Source: Vitrella brassicaformis CCMP3155
Taxonomy: Eukaryota > Protista > Chromerida
Reading direction: 5' to 3'
Length of the DNA stretch: 64,000 nt
NCBI GenBank assembly: GCA_001179505.1
Contig: CDMY01000688.1
Coordinates: 62,001-126,000, forward strand
Shown here: one piece after another, positions 41,914 to 63,042 of the stretch
Layout of the letters: each line of letters begins with the position of its first letter
Numbering within the stretch: position 1 is the first letter of the stretch
Notes under the pieces: generated by a model
The model's database searches: none
Told to the model about the DNA's origin: nothing
The model's input: the letters and a program-made list of their open reading frames with translations, nothing else
Position numbers and translations under genes: made by a program

Positions 41914-44900
41914 TCAGTCATCATCGAAATCCATCACCTGGTCCTCTGTCACAGCGGCACGCTGGGCAGGGGCAGGACGCACCTCACGCACACCCCCACC
42001 GAAACCCCCTTCACCCACAACATGTTCTTCCAGATGCCTGAGCGTACTCTCGAACTCCTGCTGCTCATCATCCCCCCCTCCAAACCGAGGCGGCTCTCTC
42101 TCCCTCGCCAGATTGGCGCTCGCCGGCCGCCGCACCGGGATGGCTGGCGGGGGCAGGGGCGTCGGCGGTGCGCGTGAGACTGAGAGCATGGCGGGGGGCG
42201 GGGGGCGGGAGAGCCGTGTGTCGATGAGATCTTCGAGGATCTGGGCCTTCATGCGCTGCTTGGTCGGCCGGTCCACCAGACGGCCGCCCTGTGTGCCCTC
42301 GATCCACCTGCGATACGATCACACAAACAGAATAGAGAGCCATGGTGACTATGGATGGATGGATGGAGGCATACCTACCGTGTGGCCCAGTCTGTGAGTG
42401 TCTCCTCCCCCTGCAGAGGGGCGAGGGGCAGGCCGATCGGAGGCACATGCGGACGGGCCATCATCATCCGCGGAGACACCGATAGCCGCACCCTGAGTGA
42501 GTGCAGGAGACACACACATCAATCACACCATTCCATTCTGAGTGTGTGTGTTTGGAGGCCATGTCCTGCCCTGTCCTGTCCTGCATGCACTCCACTCCTA
42601 CCCAGCTGTGGCAACCGGCTGCTCCCCTTCTCTCGGCGTCACCCCATAGAAGACCAATATCGGGGCGTCCCCCGCCGCCCTCCCATAAGCCGCACACGCC
42701 AGAATATGATGAGTGGGCGACCACGCCACAGCCATCACCGGTGCAGGCGCCCGCACCCTTGGCTGGTCGCTCTTCATCTGACCCGATGCCACCTCCCACA
42801 GCACCAGGCGGCCCGACTCGCAGCCAGACGCCACCAAGCGGCCATCTGGTGAGAGGACGCTGCGAATGGGGTGTGTGGTGCACTGGGAGCCGGCAAGGAT
42901 TTGATCGATGTGTAGCGACGCGTGGTGGAGCCTGGCCATGCGGACGAGGTTGTCCTTGGTGTTGAGCAGCACGCACTGGTCGAGCGACGCTGCAGCTGGG
43001 GGCGATCTGGGTGTGGGCGAGAGGGGTGCTGATGATGACATCTGGGGCGGGGGGGTGGGTGCCAGCTGGAAGTGGTGCAGGGGGGTGCCGACCAGGTCGA
43101 GATGGAGGAAGGAGCGGATCAACGTCAGCTGCAGGGGCTCACCTGCACATGCAACGAACGGCACACACACATCCCTGCTGTCTGTCTGTCTGGGTGTGTC
43201 TGTCGCTCCCTCCCTCCCTCCCTCCCTGACCTTGATAGAAGTGCAGTGCCCACATGCACAAGGTCCCATTGGACAGCGAGGCATACAAATGGTGCGGGCG
43301 GGTGGGGGCAAACCGCACACACAGCACCTGCGGGATCCCTCCATTCCCCTCATCCCTCCCTCCCCGTGTGGGCGTCGGCGGCCGCACCCTCGTCCGCCCC
43401 GCTCCCATATCCCTCTCGTCCCACGCAGAGCCGATGTCGGGCAGCGGCACTGACAGCAGCAACTCGCAGTGCCACCGCTCTTGCTGCATGCGGCCGTGTG
43501 GATGTTGTCCATTTGGTGTAAAGTGGTATGGCGAGTCGGGCGGGGGCGGGGGGGATACTGGGGAAGAGATGAGGGGACGGGTGGTGGGGGGTGCTGGTGC
43601 TGGTGACGTAAAGAGCGACGGCTGCTGGGGCTGGTCGGCCGCAGAGGACTTCCACACACGCCACAACTGACACATAAGGAACATAAGGACAAAGGGCATC
43701 GCATCACGTCTCCCCTCCCCTCCCTCTCCTCCCTCTGTGTCTCACTAACTTTGATCCCGAAATCATAGCCCCCCACAGCCACGGTGAGTGTGGGGAAGGT
43801 CACGTGCCTCCGGCCTTCTGGCGGGGTGGCTATGGCGTGTGCAGAATACACATAGCTGGGGTGGTACAGCACCACATCCGGCTCGACCATCGCCGAAGTG
43901 GCGGCGGTGTCAAGCAGTGACGACGTGCTGGGTGGCGGCCACTCGAAGACGTTGACGGTGCCGTCGCCCCCTGCACTGATAAGCATCGCCGCGTTCTTGG
44001 ACAGAGCGGGAGGAGAGACGTCATCCGATGCCGCCTGTGGCTGCTGAGCACCTGCACAAGTGACCAATCCATGTCAACATGTCTCTCTCCCTCTCTCTCC
44101 CTCTCTCCCTCTCTCCCTCTCCCTCTCACCGTGTCTATACGATTCGGGCGGCTGGCCTCTGAACGATCGCAGGAAGTTTTTGAGCAACCCTACAGTGGCG
44201 CCCTCAGATCTCCCCGATCTCCCTGTGGTCGCGTCAAACTGGCCGGGGGGTATCATGGGCTCATCAGGGGGCGGCTGCACCTCACGCATCGACGGGGCGG
44301 CAGATGAGGGAAGGGGACACCAGATTAGGTCATACACCAAAGCTTGATGGCCTGACAGAAAGACAGAGGAGCAAGAAGGTGCATATTCAGGCGGAGGCGG
44401 GTGGTGTTCATTCACCTTTCAGAACAGCGGTGAGGACGCCGTCACGCACACGGAACACGCGAAGGTCAAACCTGAGACAAATGACGAGGAGGCGGCATCC
44501 ATATATCCCAGCTGACATTCTACGTCTCTCCCTCCCTCCCTCCCTCCCTCCCTCACCTGTTCCTCCTGGCCACGGCGGCAGCAAGGAACTCCCCCTGGGG
44601 ATGGAAGGCTAGCCGCGAGCACCCGCTCTCCGCCGTCGGCAACTCGTAAGCAAGTCTCTCGGGCACCACGCACAATGTCCCAGCCTCCCGCCTGGCCTCG
44701 TCCATTGGTATCAGCTCCTCCACCCCCGCTCTCTCCTCCCTCCCCTCCCTCACGGCCCTGGCCGTCGGCAAAGGCAGCTTCCTCGGCTCCTCCCTGCTCT
44801 CCATCACATACCGCATTGTGTCTGAGGTGATGTCGAGGGCTTCCATCGCCAGCTGAGTGGGGATGAGGTCGACGGTGAGGGTGAGAGTGAAGGGGGCCGG

Positions 44901-46616: not shown

Positions 46617-47054
46617 CAGATTTCGTTAGAATCTTCACTCTGCGAGCTGAAGCTCGCGACTTCCCAAACCCCGTGCAGGGTTTGACCAGGCAGGGTTTTC
46701 CGTGGTAAACATCCACTTCTCGGGCCTGGGAAGGCAGATCTTCCGCTCCCTTCAGCCGTCTATCCACTCAGCGCCATCTCCTGCCTGCCTGCCTGCCTGT
46801 CTGCCTGTCCGGCAGATAAAGGTGCTTTTCCTGTACGATGCCTTCAATAGCATGAGTCAGAGCGCATACCTGCACGTCACCGCCATGGGCCACAAAGTAC
46901 GCACGCGCCGCATGCAGTGCAGTCTGAGAGCAAGGCAGTCACTTGGTCGCTTATGTGTTGACTGGTCATGCATCGCATTGCCTTGCCAGGTCGTCAGGAC
47001 CGAGTACGTCTCGCTGGAGCACACGCTGGATCTGCTGGCCACCGAGCAGAAGAC
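46617..47054 (+). pseudogene. Truncated direct duplicate of the HypX upstream region, exon 1, intron 1 and exon 2
   Basis: Near-identical to 48217-48670 (ctgtacgatgccttcaatagcatgagtcagagcgcatacctgcacgtcaccgccat). The ATG AAG GTG of the gene reads ATA AAG GTG here; the copy breaks at a (CAGG)n tract. Confidence 0.9.
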
Positions 47055-47230
47055 AGGCAGGCGGGCAGGCAGGCGCATTGCAGACGATAAATGCATTCCT
47101 TGAGATGCAAAGGAGGGAGGAGGAAAGGTATGATCTTGCTCACGTCCACGGGGCGACCCGTCTTCTCCTCGGTGGCCAGCAGATCCAGCGTGTGCTCCAG
47201 CGAGACGTACTCGGTCCTGACGACCTGGCA
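46984..47230. repeat. Inverted repeat: 71-bp arms (46984-47054 and 47160-47230), one mismatch, ~105-nt spacer
   Basis: tgccaggtcgtcaggacc...gccaccgagcagaagac versus the reverse complement ...gccaccgaggagaagac. Confidence 0.93.
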
Positions 47231-47269
47231 ATGCGACGCGAGACCAGTCAATAATATCATCGTGGACGA

Positions 47270-47849: not shown

Positions 47850-48444
47850 CACATCGAGTCACACACCTGCATGGGTGCACAGACACACACCGTAATCCGT
47901 GACATCATCCTTCAACCACTGCTGGCGCACCTGGTCACGACATTATCATCTGCTTGAGGTGAGGCGGATAAACCTCAGCTTGGTCTTCCCCCCCGCGATC
48001 AGCCAGCACCAGCAGCACCAGCGTTCACCGTCTGCACAGCAGTTTGCACCTGTCTCCATTGTTTTGGAGTCGCAGCAGTCCCCTGGACTCCCTTTGCCAT
48101 ACCTCTTGTAAGCCAGCACGTAAGCCAGCAGCAGCAGACTCCCCGGTCGCCAACTTCAACAACTTCCGATTGGCGGTGGATGAGCGGCAGTATGATCAGC
48201 GGCGTGTATTCAACAGATTTCGTTTAGAATCTTCGAAGAAGGGGTTCAGAAGAAGGGGTTCCGTCTCGCCTGGCGTCAGGGGTTCGGTCTGCGAGCTGAA
48301 GCTCGCGACTTCTTCGCAGGGTTTGACCTGGGAGGGTTTTCCATGGTAAATATCTACTGATCTTTGGATCTTCTTGCCTATCCGGTCAGCGCCAGCTCCT
48401 GTGTGCCTGTCGGCTGTCGGCCAGCCACGAGCAAAAAAGCCAAG

Positions 48445-51131
48445 ATGAAGGTGTTTTTCCTGTACGATGCCTTCAATAGCATGAGTCAGAGCGCATACCT
48501 GCACGTCACCGCCATAGGCCACAAGGTACGCACGCGCGGCATGCAGTGCAGTCTGAGAACAAGGCAGTCACTTGGTTGGTTCCCTGGTCTCGCATCGCAT
48601 TGCCTTGCCAGGTCGTCAGGACCGAGTACGTCTCGCTGAGGCACACGCTGGATCTGCTGGCCGCCGAGCAGAAGACGGGTCGCCCCGTGGACGTAAGCAA
48701 GATCATATCATACCTTTCCTACCTCCCTTCCTCTCACACCCGGCCCACTCTCTCAAGAGATGCATTCATTCATATAGTCTGCAATGCTCCTGCCTGCCTG
48801 CCTTCCAAAATATGTTTATTAGGTGATGCTGTGCCCCTTCCTGACCAAGATCGTTCCCGAGGAGCTCTACAACCACCCCCACATCCCCTGCCTCATCGTA
48901 CACCCAGGTGGGTAGGCACGGCCGCTCACTGCATCCGCCCACACCACACCATCGACGTGTGTGCAGGTGTGGTGGGCGACAGAGGGGCCAGTAGCATCGA
49001 CTGGGCACTCATGCGCGGCGAGCTCGAGTGGGGCGTGACTGTCATGCAGGTGTGCGGGTGCGTGCAGGCTGCACCAGACAGACAGACAGACACACAGACT
49101 GACTGACACAAACGGTCCTTGCTTGATGGGGTGTGCTCTGCGGGTGCAGGCCGCCGAGGAGGTCGACGTTGGTGATGTGTACGCCACGACCACGGTGTCC
49201 CTGCGCCGCCCTCACGCCTTTAGCCCGCCCCTGACCAAGAGCAGCGTGTATCGGCGCGAGGTCAATCAGGCGGCCATGGCAGCCATCACCGAGGCCCTCA
49301 CCATGGTGGAGAACGGGGTCGCGCCGATGCCGCTCGAGTGCCTGGCCCACAAGGGGACGTTCCTGCCATGCATGAGGCAGAAAGAGCGCAAGATTGACTG
49401 GTCCATGGAGGCGGCCGAGGTGGTGCGGCGCTGCAACGCCTCGGAGACGCAGCCTGGCGTCCTCGAAGTCTTCAACGGTCAGTTAGCCAGGGAGAGGAAA
49501 CCGATTGACACGTGTGTGTGTGAGTGAGAGTGTGTGTGTGCAGGCGAGAGTTACCTGTTGTATGGCTTCTCGACTGAGTGCCTGATGGACCTGTCGCAGT
49601 GCGCCCTCCCTCCCAAGTCGCTCATCGGCCACCGGGAGGGTGCGGTGCTCGTCAAATGTGGTGGCAACACGGCCATGTGGGTGTCGCAGGCCAAGCGGCT
49701 CAACACCAAGGAAAGCAGGTTCTTCAAGGCGCCCCCCGTGAATGTGCTCAGCAAACACATCACCGGGTCCCTGCCCGAGCTGACGCTCGACTCGCCGCCC
49801 TCTGGCTGCCGGTGGGCAGCCTGCCCAAGACAAAGCAGGACATCTGGGCCTGGAAACATCGGGTGGGTAAAGACAAGACCGCCGGAGCGACGCGCGAGCA
49901 ATGGTGCGTATGTGTGTGTGTGCAGGGGGTGTGTCATCTTTGGTTCGACTTCTACAACGGTGCCATGAGCACTGACCAGGGACGGCGTCTTGCGGAGGTG
50001 CTGCAGCGCGTCAAGACAGAGAGCGACGTTCGGGTGCTGGTGCTCATGGGCGGACTCAACTTCTTCTGGTACACACACATCGACAGACACAACACATCTG
50101 GCTGCGCTGCCCTTGTCGTGGCTGCAGCAACGGGATCCACCTAAATGTCATTGAGGCAGCCGGAGGGATGCAGGAGCAGGCCGACGAGTCATGGTGAGTG
50201 ACTGAGGGTGTGCACCTTCCTGCACACACACACACACACACACACCACAGCTGTAGCAGAGTGTGTGTGTGTGTGTTAGGGCCAACATCAACGCGATAGA
50301 CGATGTGGTGCGCGAGGTGCTGCTGTGCCACGACAAACTCACCATCTCGGCCATGAGTGGCAACGCGGGAGCTGGTGCGCCAACCAACACACACTGATTG
50401 ATTGATGCACTAACTGTCACAGACAGACGACAATGACAATGGCCGGCCTGGTGTGCCTGCAGGTGGCGTGATGGCAGCACTGGCAGCCGACTACGTGTGG
50501 ACACACCCACGGGTCGTGCTCAACCCTTCCTACAAGGTAGGTAGGAGGGTGCGTGGCAGCCACCTTGTGTGTGCCTTGCCCATGAGGTGTCTGTGTGTGT
50601 CTGGGTGTGTGCGTGTGTGTGCTGTGAAGGCGTTGGACCTCTACGGCAGCGAATACTGGACCTACTCGCTGCCGAAGCGCGTGGGCCACCACCAGGCGCT
50701 GGCCATCACCGAAGGCAGCGAGCCGATGTCGGCCAAGCAGGCCCTCGGCCTCGGGATGGTCGATAGGGTCTTCGGCACGGATCCTGACAGCTTCGTGGCG
50801 GCCGTCATCCGCGAGGCAGAGGCGCTGGTGGATGACCAGGCCAGTCTCGACGCACTCCTGGACACCAAGAGGGAAATGGTGGACGCCGATTCGTTCCGAA
50901 GCCTCCTGGCCGACCACCGCCGAAGGGAGCTGGAGAGGATGAAGGCCTGCTTCCAGATGCCGTCGTACCACACCAAGTCAGTGCGGTTGACACAGACAGA
51001 CAGACAGACCGACATTGGCCAGACACAAGAGTTGGTGTGTGGCATGTGGTGTGCCTGCCAGGCGAAGGGCCTTCGTCTACAAGTCCAAGGCTGACAACCC
51101 CATCAAGGCCAAGTGGTCGTGCCTCGCGTGA
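48445..51131 (+). CDS. hypX: HypX/HoxX homologue: N10-formyl-THF formyltransferase-like domain fused to an enoyl-CoA hydratase/crotonase-like domain; 12 exons
   Basis: MKVFFLYDAFNSMSQ; LCPFLTKIVPEEL; LIVHPGVVGDRGASSIDWALMRGELEWGVTVMQAAEEVDVGDVY; KSSVYRREV; RKIDWS; ASETQPG; FDFYNGAMSTDQ; FFCNGIHLNVIE; DESWANINAIDDVV; GNAGAGG; VLNPSYK; LYGSEYWTYSLPKRVG; SYHTKRRAFV. Colinear with bacterial HypX as I recall it. Apparent 1-nt frameshift near 49795-49802. Confidence 0.93.
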
Positions 51132-51298
51132 ACGACGCCCCGACCGACCCACACTGGCTTGTAATGTGCATGTCTGTCTGCATGTCCTTCATGGTGTGAG
51201 CGCACGGACGAAACGTCTGGGTGCTCTGACCTACCTGACCTGGTTTGCTCGATTTTTGCATTCCAGTCGGTCAGTGCTATGCTATCGTGCATTCCTGC

Positions 51299-51329
<31 letters not shown>

Positions 51330-61992: not shown

Positions 61993-63042
61993 AATGCGGC
62001 AAAACACGAAGGCACCCACGCAATTGTCCAATTTTGCCTGTCTGTGTGTGGTTGTGTTGTGTTGTGTCTCACACAACTCTCAGTTGAGGATTACACTGGT
62101 GTGTCGTTCACCATCCGCAAGGAGGAGCAGCAGGAGGAGGGCAGTGGTTCGGTGGCCGAGCTGCTGACCCCCCTGGCGGCCTCCCAGACCAAGTGGGACA
62201 TCTCCCCGCCCGTCACCGAGCCCCCTCCCCCCGCTCCCAGGGAACAAGAAGACGACAACAACCAGCCTGACACTGAGGCACCGCAACTCACCACAGAGAC
62301 CAACAACACCACCAAGGACGACGGCACCGACAAGAAGGAGTCGGCACCCACACCCGCACCGGCCCCTGCGCCGTCCACAGAGCAGCATGCGTCCGAGAGG
62401 CACCACCATAAGGGCGAGACGGACAGCACTGCGGCGGTGCTGCAAGACGACGGACCCGACGATGACGAGCAGGACGACAACCATCACCACCACCACCAGC
62501 AGCAGCAGCAGGGGGAGGTCATCGCACCGAAGGACACCTGCCCCAGCCCCAGCCCCCCCACCACCACCAAGCCAGAGGAGCCGACCACCACCATCACACA
62601 GGGCGGCAACCAGCACACAACCAAGGCCGACACCGCCACACCATCACCCTCCCCATCCCCACCGGCACCAGTGGTGACGGCCAACGCCGCCGCCCCGATC
62701 GTCAAGGCCGAGTGTGCGGCGGGCGGCTGCGGTGAGCAGGGGCAGGACAACAAGGCGGGGGAGGGGGAGGGCAAGGGGGCTGGGGAGGGGCAGGTCGTCG
62801 GCGCCGTCAAGGAGGTCACGCCATCGGCCTCCCCTTCGTCGGCAGCCAAGGCGGCCAAGGCCACCCAGGGCCCTGTGGGCGGTAGCGAGAGGAGTGCGGA
62901 CGCGTCGACGACTGACGTTGAGGAGCACGAAGCCATGCTGGCACACAAGCAGGCTGCCGCCGTGGCCACGGCGGCGGCAGGGGAGGGAGAGGGGGGTGAG
63001 GAGGAAAAGGAGGACGTCAGCGGCACCGAGGCCGCCGCGTAG
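61559..63042 (+). CDS. Hypothetical protein: short aromatic-rich N-terminal region followed by a long low-complexity acidic/Pro/Ala tail
   Basis: MTWGFSNGELKVYQP|HQPTHCVAKRVFMGADTPQHAPRYAEPGEKFYKLRAETQWYYW|VEDYTGVSFTIRK...; two phase-consistent introns; TAG at 63042. Confidence 0.7.

Follow-up and report, generated by a model that had tools for sequence, protein, structure and literature searches.

Bacterial HypX (also known as HoxX) is a CO-forming maturase of [NiFe]-hydrogenases. It converts N10-formyl-tetrahydrofolate (N10-formyl-THF) via formyl-coenzyme A (formyl-CoA) to carbon monoxide (CO) (PMC6802093; review PMC12134894), and its gene sits in hyp operons. The bacterial enzyme acts in two steps: the N-terminal formyltransferase domain transfers the formyl group of N10-formyl-THF to a tightly bound CoA, and the C-terminal crotonase-fold domain decarbonylates the resulting formyl-CoA to CO. 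The catalytic residues of the Aquifex aeolicus and Cupriavidus necator enzymes are His74, Asp80, Asp109, Tyr416 and Glu426 in Aquifex numbering, and the last two, which correspond to C. necator Tyr439 and Glu449, are needed for function (PMC6802093). In Aquifex HypX, the C-terminal domain anchors the adenosine of CoA, and the cavity extends across both domains (PMC6802093). Here we describe a HypX-like gene in the chromerid alga Vitrella brassicaformis CCMP3155. It occupies positions 48445-51131 on the forward strand of what we call the window, i.e., the whole 64,000-nucleotide stretch of contig CDMY01000688.1 that was analyzed (contig positions 62,001 to 126,000).

The Vitrella gene is a nuclear member of a widespread eukaryotic family. 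Its mRNA is spliced at 11 introns, but the reading frame is broken between the two enzymatic domains. We think that this member of the eukaryotic HoxX-like family is probably a very young pseudogene or null allele whose transcription and correct splicing continue, and from which at most a fragment consisting of the N-terminal domain is made.

Homology to bacterial HypX

The conceptual Vitrella protein is collinear from end to end with C. necator HypX/HoxX (40.6% identity), and has the same order of domains, with a formyltransferase N-domain ahead of a crotonase-fold C-domain. Among PDB entries, the exons match Aquifex HypX best (6J0P, named “Hydrogenase regulation HoxX”), with E-values of 1e-07 for exon 5, 2e-05 for exon 7 and 7e-14 for exon 11. 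The scores of 10-formyl-THF dehydrogenase and generic enoyl-CoA hydratases are far weaker. Pfam matches on the exons are weak (PF00551 Formyl_trans_N, PF02911 Formyl_trans_C and PF00378 ECH_1). There is no HypX-specific NCBIfam model, and C. necator HoxX itself matches only generic formyltransferase and crotonase models. Similarly, an ESM Atlas look-up of exon 11 returned only generic bacterial crotonase clusters.

All four catalytic motifs that a first-pass annotation of this DNA had described as intact are present at the sequence level: HPGVVGDRG (48901-48986, split by an intron), EEVDVGD (49156-49176), NPSYK (50522-50536) and YGSEYWTY (50642-50665). The catalytic triad of the N-domain is retained as His81, Asp87 and Asp116 (Aquifex His74, Asp80 and Asp109), in columns with a conservation of at least 90%. 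The C-domain pair is retained as Tyr452 in NPSYK and Glu461 in YGSEYWTY (Aquifex Tyr416 and Glu426), but only in a second frame, which we call frame B to distinguish it from frame A, the frame of the start codon. Frame B encodes an intact crotonase-fold (decarbonylase) domain in exons 7-12, including the motifs FYNGAMS, NAGAGG, NPSYK and YGSEYWTY. Because the coding sequence keeps all five catalytic residues of both steps, a recent ancestor of the Vitrella gene very probably performed the same conversion of formyl-THF to CO.

The residues that tether CoA (Arg9, Gln15, Arg131, Ser194, Gln195, Asn306 and Arg542, with Ala392 and Ile419 in the neck; Aquifex numbering) are retained overall. Gln15, Arg131, Gln195, Asn306 and Ala392 are identical in Vitrella, and three others are replaced conservatively (Ser194 by Thr, Arg542 by Lys and Ile419 by Leu). 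The Arg9 contact is Ala in Vitrella, and C. necator also lacks this Arg. In an alignment of 83 family members, with the Vitrella frames joined by an X at the break, the columns with at least 90% conservation that Vitrella keeps number 31 of 34 in the N-terminal half, and 53 of 56 after it in the C-terminal half. No stop codon occurs in the 286 codons of frame B.

Exons and spliced transcripts

The gene has 12 exons and 11 GT..AG introns, and extends from an ATG at 48445 to a TGA at 51129-51131. Its introns are rich in (CAGA)n and (GT)n microsatellites. Spliced RNA contigs covering the gene were found in three runs (X1, X5 and X6), each from a different study. Each run has one contig of roughly 2 kb (2055 nucleotides in X1, and 1926 and 1925 nucleotides in X5 and X6, respectively), from which introns are removed at GT..AG. 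The DNA-like run X2 contains the gene sequence in unspliced form. X2 contains every word that was sampled from the 3-kb stretch, and the three RNA runs contain about 57-59% of them. The transcript evidence consists of assembled contigs, in which rare isoforms get dropped.

Splice joints listed from the RNA contigs are 48525/48612, 48692/48823, 48907/48967, 49049/49150, 49862/49926, 50068/50128, 50374/50463 and 50976/51062, and the three other exon junctions were deduced from contiguous contig coordinates. All 11 introns are thus removed in RNA contigs of three runs, so the gene is nuclear, transcribed and spliced. The first-pass annotation had proposed 12 exons with microsatellite introns and argued from them against bacterial contamination, and the lack of a spliced transcript would have counted against it. 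These contigs bear out the 12 exons. The gene is the genuine nuclear, eukaryotic HypX homolog that this annotation had supposed.

The spliced RNA contigs delimit a transcribed span of 48357..51300 (+), and extend about 26 nucleotides past 51300. The 5′ untranslated region, from the start of the RNA contig, is 48357-48444 (+), and within this contig there is no in-frame ATG upstream of 48445. RNA contigs define the coding part of exon 1 with the first ATG (48445..48525), exon 2 (48612..48692, entered at a contig joint of 48523>48610 with 86 nucleotides skipped), exon 3 (48823..48907, which ends within the HPG motif that contains His81) and exon 4 (48967..49049, with VVGDRG and Asp87). Exon 5 (49150..49477) contains EEVDVGD with Asp116, YRREV, whose Arg corresponds to Arg131, and TQPG, which corresponds to Ser194/Gln195. 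Exon 6 (49544..49862) is a single uninterrupted exon in the X1, X5, X6 and X2 contigs. Homology and RNA contigs together define exons 7-12 (49926-50068, 50128-50193, 50280-50374, 50463-50536, 50630-50976 and 51062-51131). All exons are on the forward strand.

The N-terminus of the Vitrella protein aligns at residue 1 of bacterial HypX, with no targeting extension, and its first residues are the conserved M-x-(I/V)-x-(L/F)-L. Streptophyte homologs (P0275 from Ceratodon, P0297 from Chara, P0283 and P0288) start about 90-100 residues before the conserved N-terminus, and these extensions may be organelle-targeting sequences.

A shifted reading frame in the interdomain linker

The coding sequence of the 12 exons is 1772 nucleotides long, which is not a multiple of 3. 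The frame supported by homology shifts by -1 inside exon 6, near 49800. The break can be placed within 49786..49806 (+), nominally at 49800, and fits the loss of one base in CCGCCC-TCTGG. At the break, frame A encodes ..SLPELTLDSPP and frame B encodes LWLPVGSLPKTKQDIWAWKHR. When Vitrella frame A (..TGSLPELTLDSPP) is continued in frame B (LWLPVGSLPKTKQDIWAWKHRG), the result aligns without gaps to the protein of the tardigrade Hypsibius exemplaris (P0123; ASVPEIPLPPQSLQVPFRTTPKTFQEIFTWEHRG). It aligns likewise without gaps to P0127 and to the closest relative that we found, L003 (..VDELPLHSTTTMKLPLRSLPETFQEIFFWE). Since the homologs read through exon 6 without a gap, the ancestral open reading frame (ORF) was continuous, and Vitrella lost one base. 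The break sits in the interdomain loop or linker that corresponds to Aquifex residues 269-287, as mapped with the help of the published structure (PMC6802093).

Single-base indels are common as assembly artifacts, and the gene might in principle be intact, with the break reflecting an error in the sequence or its assembly. However, the X1, X5 and X6 RNA contigs and the DNA-like X2 contig, which were assembled independently of the window and include RNA from three studies, cover 49547-49861 with 0 differences and 0 gaps relative to it. We therefore consider such an error very unlikely. The break is present in RNA and DNA contigs alike, and no single continuous ORF joins the two HypX domains. 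Thus, the 12 exons of the first-pass annotation stand, but not the single open frame implied by its “full-length two-domain protein”. A metagenome scan found no intact or variant allele around the break, and a full-length Vitrella protein is absent among the matches listed in searches with the P0123 and P0127 queries.

Both frames are open across the site, and the shift needed to join them is -1, which is what programmed ribosomal frameshifting, or else editing of the transcript, would have to supply. However, inspection of the sequence shows no slippery heptamer of the form X XXY YYZ in or around CCG CCC TCT, and Pro-tRNAs that had slipped would be mispaired at the first position of the codon. 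Moreover, the RNA is identical to the DNA at the site and no homolog is broken there. We rejected -1 ribosomal frameshifting on account of the missing slippery site, and recoding of either kind seems highly improbable.

A functional two-domain enzyme could also arise from a minor mRNA in which a cryptic GT..AG segment within exon 6 (49767..49819, +; GTCCCT..GGGCAG) is spliced out. The 53 nucleotides (2 mod 3) offset the break exactly, and removing them restores the frame. The resulting 572-amino acid protein, whose linker is 18 residues shorter, aligns over its full length with HypX. Such splicing would also account for the intact C-domain. However, the RNA contigs of X1, X5 and X6 all retain the segment, and its counterpart in all relatives is coding sequence: every aligned homolog has residues where the spliced Vitrella model leaves a gap of about 19 columns. 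The splice would remove nearly the whole interdomain loop, and its donor lacks a G at +5, which 10 of the gene's 11 real introns have. Given that 25 different GT-AG pairs in exon 6 restore the frame, the frame compatibility of this candidate carries little weight. A 13-exon model with the extra 53-nucleotide intron was rejected because the RNA contigs keep the segment and the homologs encode protein there, and rescue by a minor mRNA of this kind appears unlikely.

In the mRNA as assembled, the first ORF ends at a TGA at 49966-49968 (+) after 339 codons, with five exon junctions downstream. It consists of 305 residues that comprise the N-terminal domain and half of the linker, followed by 34 out-of-frame residues. 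Given the frame break in the mRNA, normal translation gives a product with the N-terminal domain only. This first ORF might be functional as a stand-alone formyl-THF-dependent formyltransferase, or the two domains might be made as separate polypeptides. The break lies exactly in the interdomain loop, so that the first ORF holds the complete N-domain and frame B the complete C-domain, and there is an ATG in frame B near 49654. Against this stand the anchoring of the CoA adenosine by the Aquifex enzyme's C-terminal domain and the cavity that spans both domains (PMC6802093). In addition, a ribosome start at an internal, out-of-frame AUG that follows many upstream AUGs is not expected in eukaryotes, and no separate transcript was seen in the RNA contigs. 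We regard a useful product of either sort as quite improbable.

Interpretation of the break

Our preferred interpretation remains a very young pseudogene or null allele. A one-base loss in the linker part of exon 6 shifts the frame by -1 in the sequenced strain, and this lesion is present in the mRNA. Ordinary translation would then yield a 339-amino acid N-terminal-domain protein with an aberrant tail of 34 residues, ending at a stop codon that is followed by five exon junctions. The domain past the break is free of decay, as judged from the 53 of 56 conserved columns and the lack of stops in frame B. It follows that the lesion is very young, is specific to the strain, or is bypassed at a level below what contigs make visible.

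Some points count against this interpretation. The perfect conservation past the break, the transcription and the splicing at 11 introns could also fit a break that is bypassed. Since contigs drop rare isoforms, a minor rescued mRNA is possible. Also, a single cultured strain is probably the source of all runs, and the lesion may be an allele specific to the culture, rather than the state of the species.

Distribution among eukaryotes

In a library-wide phmmer search with exon 11, no match exceeded 48% identity. The best named full-length matches come from two animals, H. exemplaris and Trichoplax, whose proteins NCBI names “Hydrogenase maturation factor HoxX”. When the tardigrade protein and P0127 served as queries, further proteins with the NCBI name “HoxX-like” came up in Bradysia (a fly), Nematostella, the corals Oculina and Montipora, and Branchiostoma (amphioxus). 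Full-length homologs that are unnamed or generically named occur in Ceratodon (a moss), Calypogeia (a liverwort), Chara and Plasmodiophora (Rhizaria). Fungi are absent from the 120 best matches of either of these two eukaryote-query searches. With C. necator HoxX as the query, the matches are dominated by bacterial HypX. One top exon-level match, P0128, comes from a noisy long-read contig, where it is an ordinary bacterial hypX within a hypB-F operon.

We inferred a quick maximum-likelihood tree of 83 rows (LG+C20 PMSF, with SH-aLRT support); it is unrooted, its bacterial sampling is limited and many of its rows are unnamed. All named bacteria form one clade of 32 rows with a support of 100, and no named eukaryote falls within it. 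Vitrella groups with P0127 (support of 99) within a clade of 20 rows (SH-aLRT of 95), in which every named member is eukaryotic. One member of the latter clade, P0292, is located on a compact eukaryotic contig, where its neighbors are the eukaryotic genes Sybindin, Utp11 and Nicastrin. The Vitrella protein thus groups with eukaryotes and apart from the bacterial HypX clade, and it is encoded by an intron-bearing, transcribed nuclear gene. The gene is a member of a widespread eukaryotic family, part of which is already labelled in databases as “hydrogenase maturation factor HoxX(-like)”. Given the limits of the tree, we claim only that the gene did not recently pass from a bacterium into Vitrella.

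The closest relative that we found (L003:5089-6957; ENA ERZ25070293, contig ctg2676l) has 53% amino acid identity to the Vitrella gene and lies on a eukaryote-like contig of 807 kb. The two genes have the position of Vitrella intron 5 in common, and the relative keeps 88 of the 90 conserved columns. A TAG in this relative replaces a Trp that is conserved in every other family member, and hence the gene was called as two genes. This TAG is another lone lesion, independent of the one in Vitrella, in a gene copy that is intact elsewhere.

In some family members, HypX is fused to FolD (PF00763/PF02882). These fusions occur in Ascophyllum (a brown alga), Rotaria (a rotifer) and several EukProt transcripts; the corresponding rows are P0331, P0385, P0302, P0335 and P0339. 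The bacterial rows P0421 (L009:6001-8628) and P0176 are also fusions, and no hyp genes were found near the bacterial fusion locus that we examined.

Hydrogenases and possible function

Using tblastn, we found no match in the 64,000-nucleotide window to HypC, HypD, HypE, HypF, NikR or the regulatory hydrogenase subunits. The association of bacterial hypX with hypA-F and [NiFe]-hydrogenase genes is thus not seen at the Vitrella locus. Full-text literature searches found no paper on the function of eukaryotic HypX/HoxX, “HoxX-like” or “HypX homolog” proteins, in agreement with the earlier impression that no function had been characterized. A “hypX” in the tyrosine cluster of Penicillium marneffei proved to be a typographical error for hmgX. 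The eukaryotic HoxX-like family is visible in database annotation, but appears to be uncharacterized.

The wider interest lies in the family. A well-characterized bacterial CO-generating enzyme has full-length homologs, catalytically intact by sequence, in many eukaryotic lineages that are not known to possess [NiFe]-hydrogenase, its sole known client. FolD makes N10-formyl-THF, and its repeated fusion to HypX adds to the evidence that these homologs keep the chemistry. It is plausible that the eukaryotic family uses CO or formyl-CoA chemistry unrelated to hydrogenases. The idea of an old horizontal acquisition that was repurposed fares unevenly: non-hydrogenase chemistry is plausible for the family, but nothing about it is special to Vitrella, given that the family occurs in many eukaryotes and lies apart from bacteria in the tree.

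A bolder proposal is that eukaryotes without [NiFe]-hydrogenase, such as corals, amphioxus, mosses and chromerid algae, keep a complete CO enzyme, and that the Vitrella copy is active by means of a bypass, e.g., rare splicing of the 53 nucleotides. If true, eukaryotic cells would have an unrecognized heme-independent way of making CO (or formyl-CoA), although we find this proposal rather doubtful as a whole. The Vitrella locus itself adds one more family member and little beyond that. As its mRNA cannot encode the two-domain enzyme, it is a poor vehicle for testing the function of the family while the break stands.

The surrounding locus

Upstream of the gene, 46675..47247 is a partial duplicate of its 5′ end with about 80% identity, arranged as a fold-back of a direct and an inverted arm. 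The direct arm (46675-47057) matches 48316-48679 of the gene, and the inverted arm (47247-47056) matches 48584-48806. A long ORF at 42601-44067 on the reverse strand has WD40 repeats at its C-terminal end, and the remaining long ORFs around the HypX-like gene have no Pfam match. The intronic (CAGA)n and (GT)n microsatellites, located at 49070-49114, 49508-49546, 50213-50285 and 50985-51015, recur throughout the window. Microsatellites of the window give spurious joints in DNA contigs.

Relation to known systems

The Vitrella protein resembles bacterial HypX/HoxX (C. necator; Aquifex 6J0P) in domain order, length, identity (40.6%), catalytic residues, the NAGAGG and FYNGAMS motifs and most CoA contacts. 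By contrast, the Vitrella gene is nuclear, has 11 spliceosomal introns and a broken ORF, lacks hyp and [NiFe] genes in the window and lies outside the bacterial clade.

The nearest full-length relatives are the eukaryotic HoxX and HoxX-like proteins and unnamed homologs listed above, including that of Hypsibius (OQV17577.1), with 46-48% identity, a common clade and the same domains and residues. Their ORFs are continuous, whereas that of Vitrella is broken, and Vitrella lacks the streptophyte extensions of about 90-100 amino acids.

The N-terminal hydrolase domain of 10-formyl-THF dehydrogenase and Met-tRNA formyltransferase share the N-domain fold and the His/Asp motif with Vitrella. However, their match to exon 5 is weaker (E-value of 0.008 versus 1e-07), and they have no crotonase-fold C-terminal domain.

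Finally, the HypX-FolD fusions of Ascophyllum nodosum, Rotaria socialis, the EukProt transcripts and the two bacterial rows have the HypX core in common with Vitrella, which does not carry a FolD module. The fusion of this core to a methylene-THF dehydrogenase/cyclohydrolase supports N10-formyl-THF as the substrate of the family.

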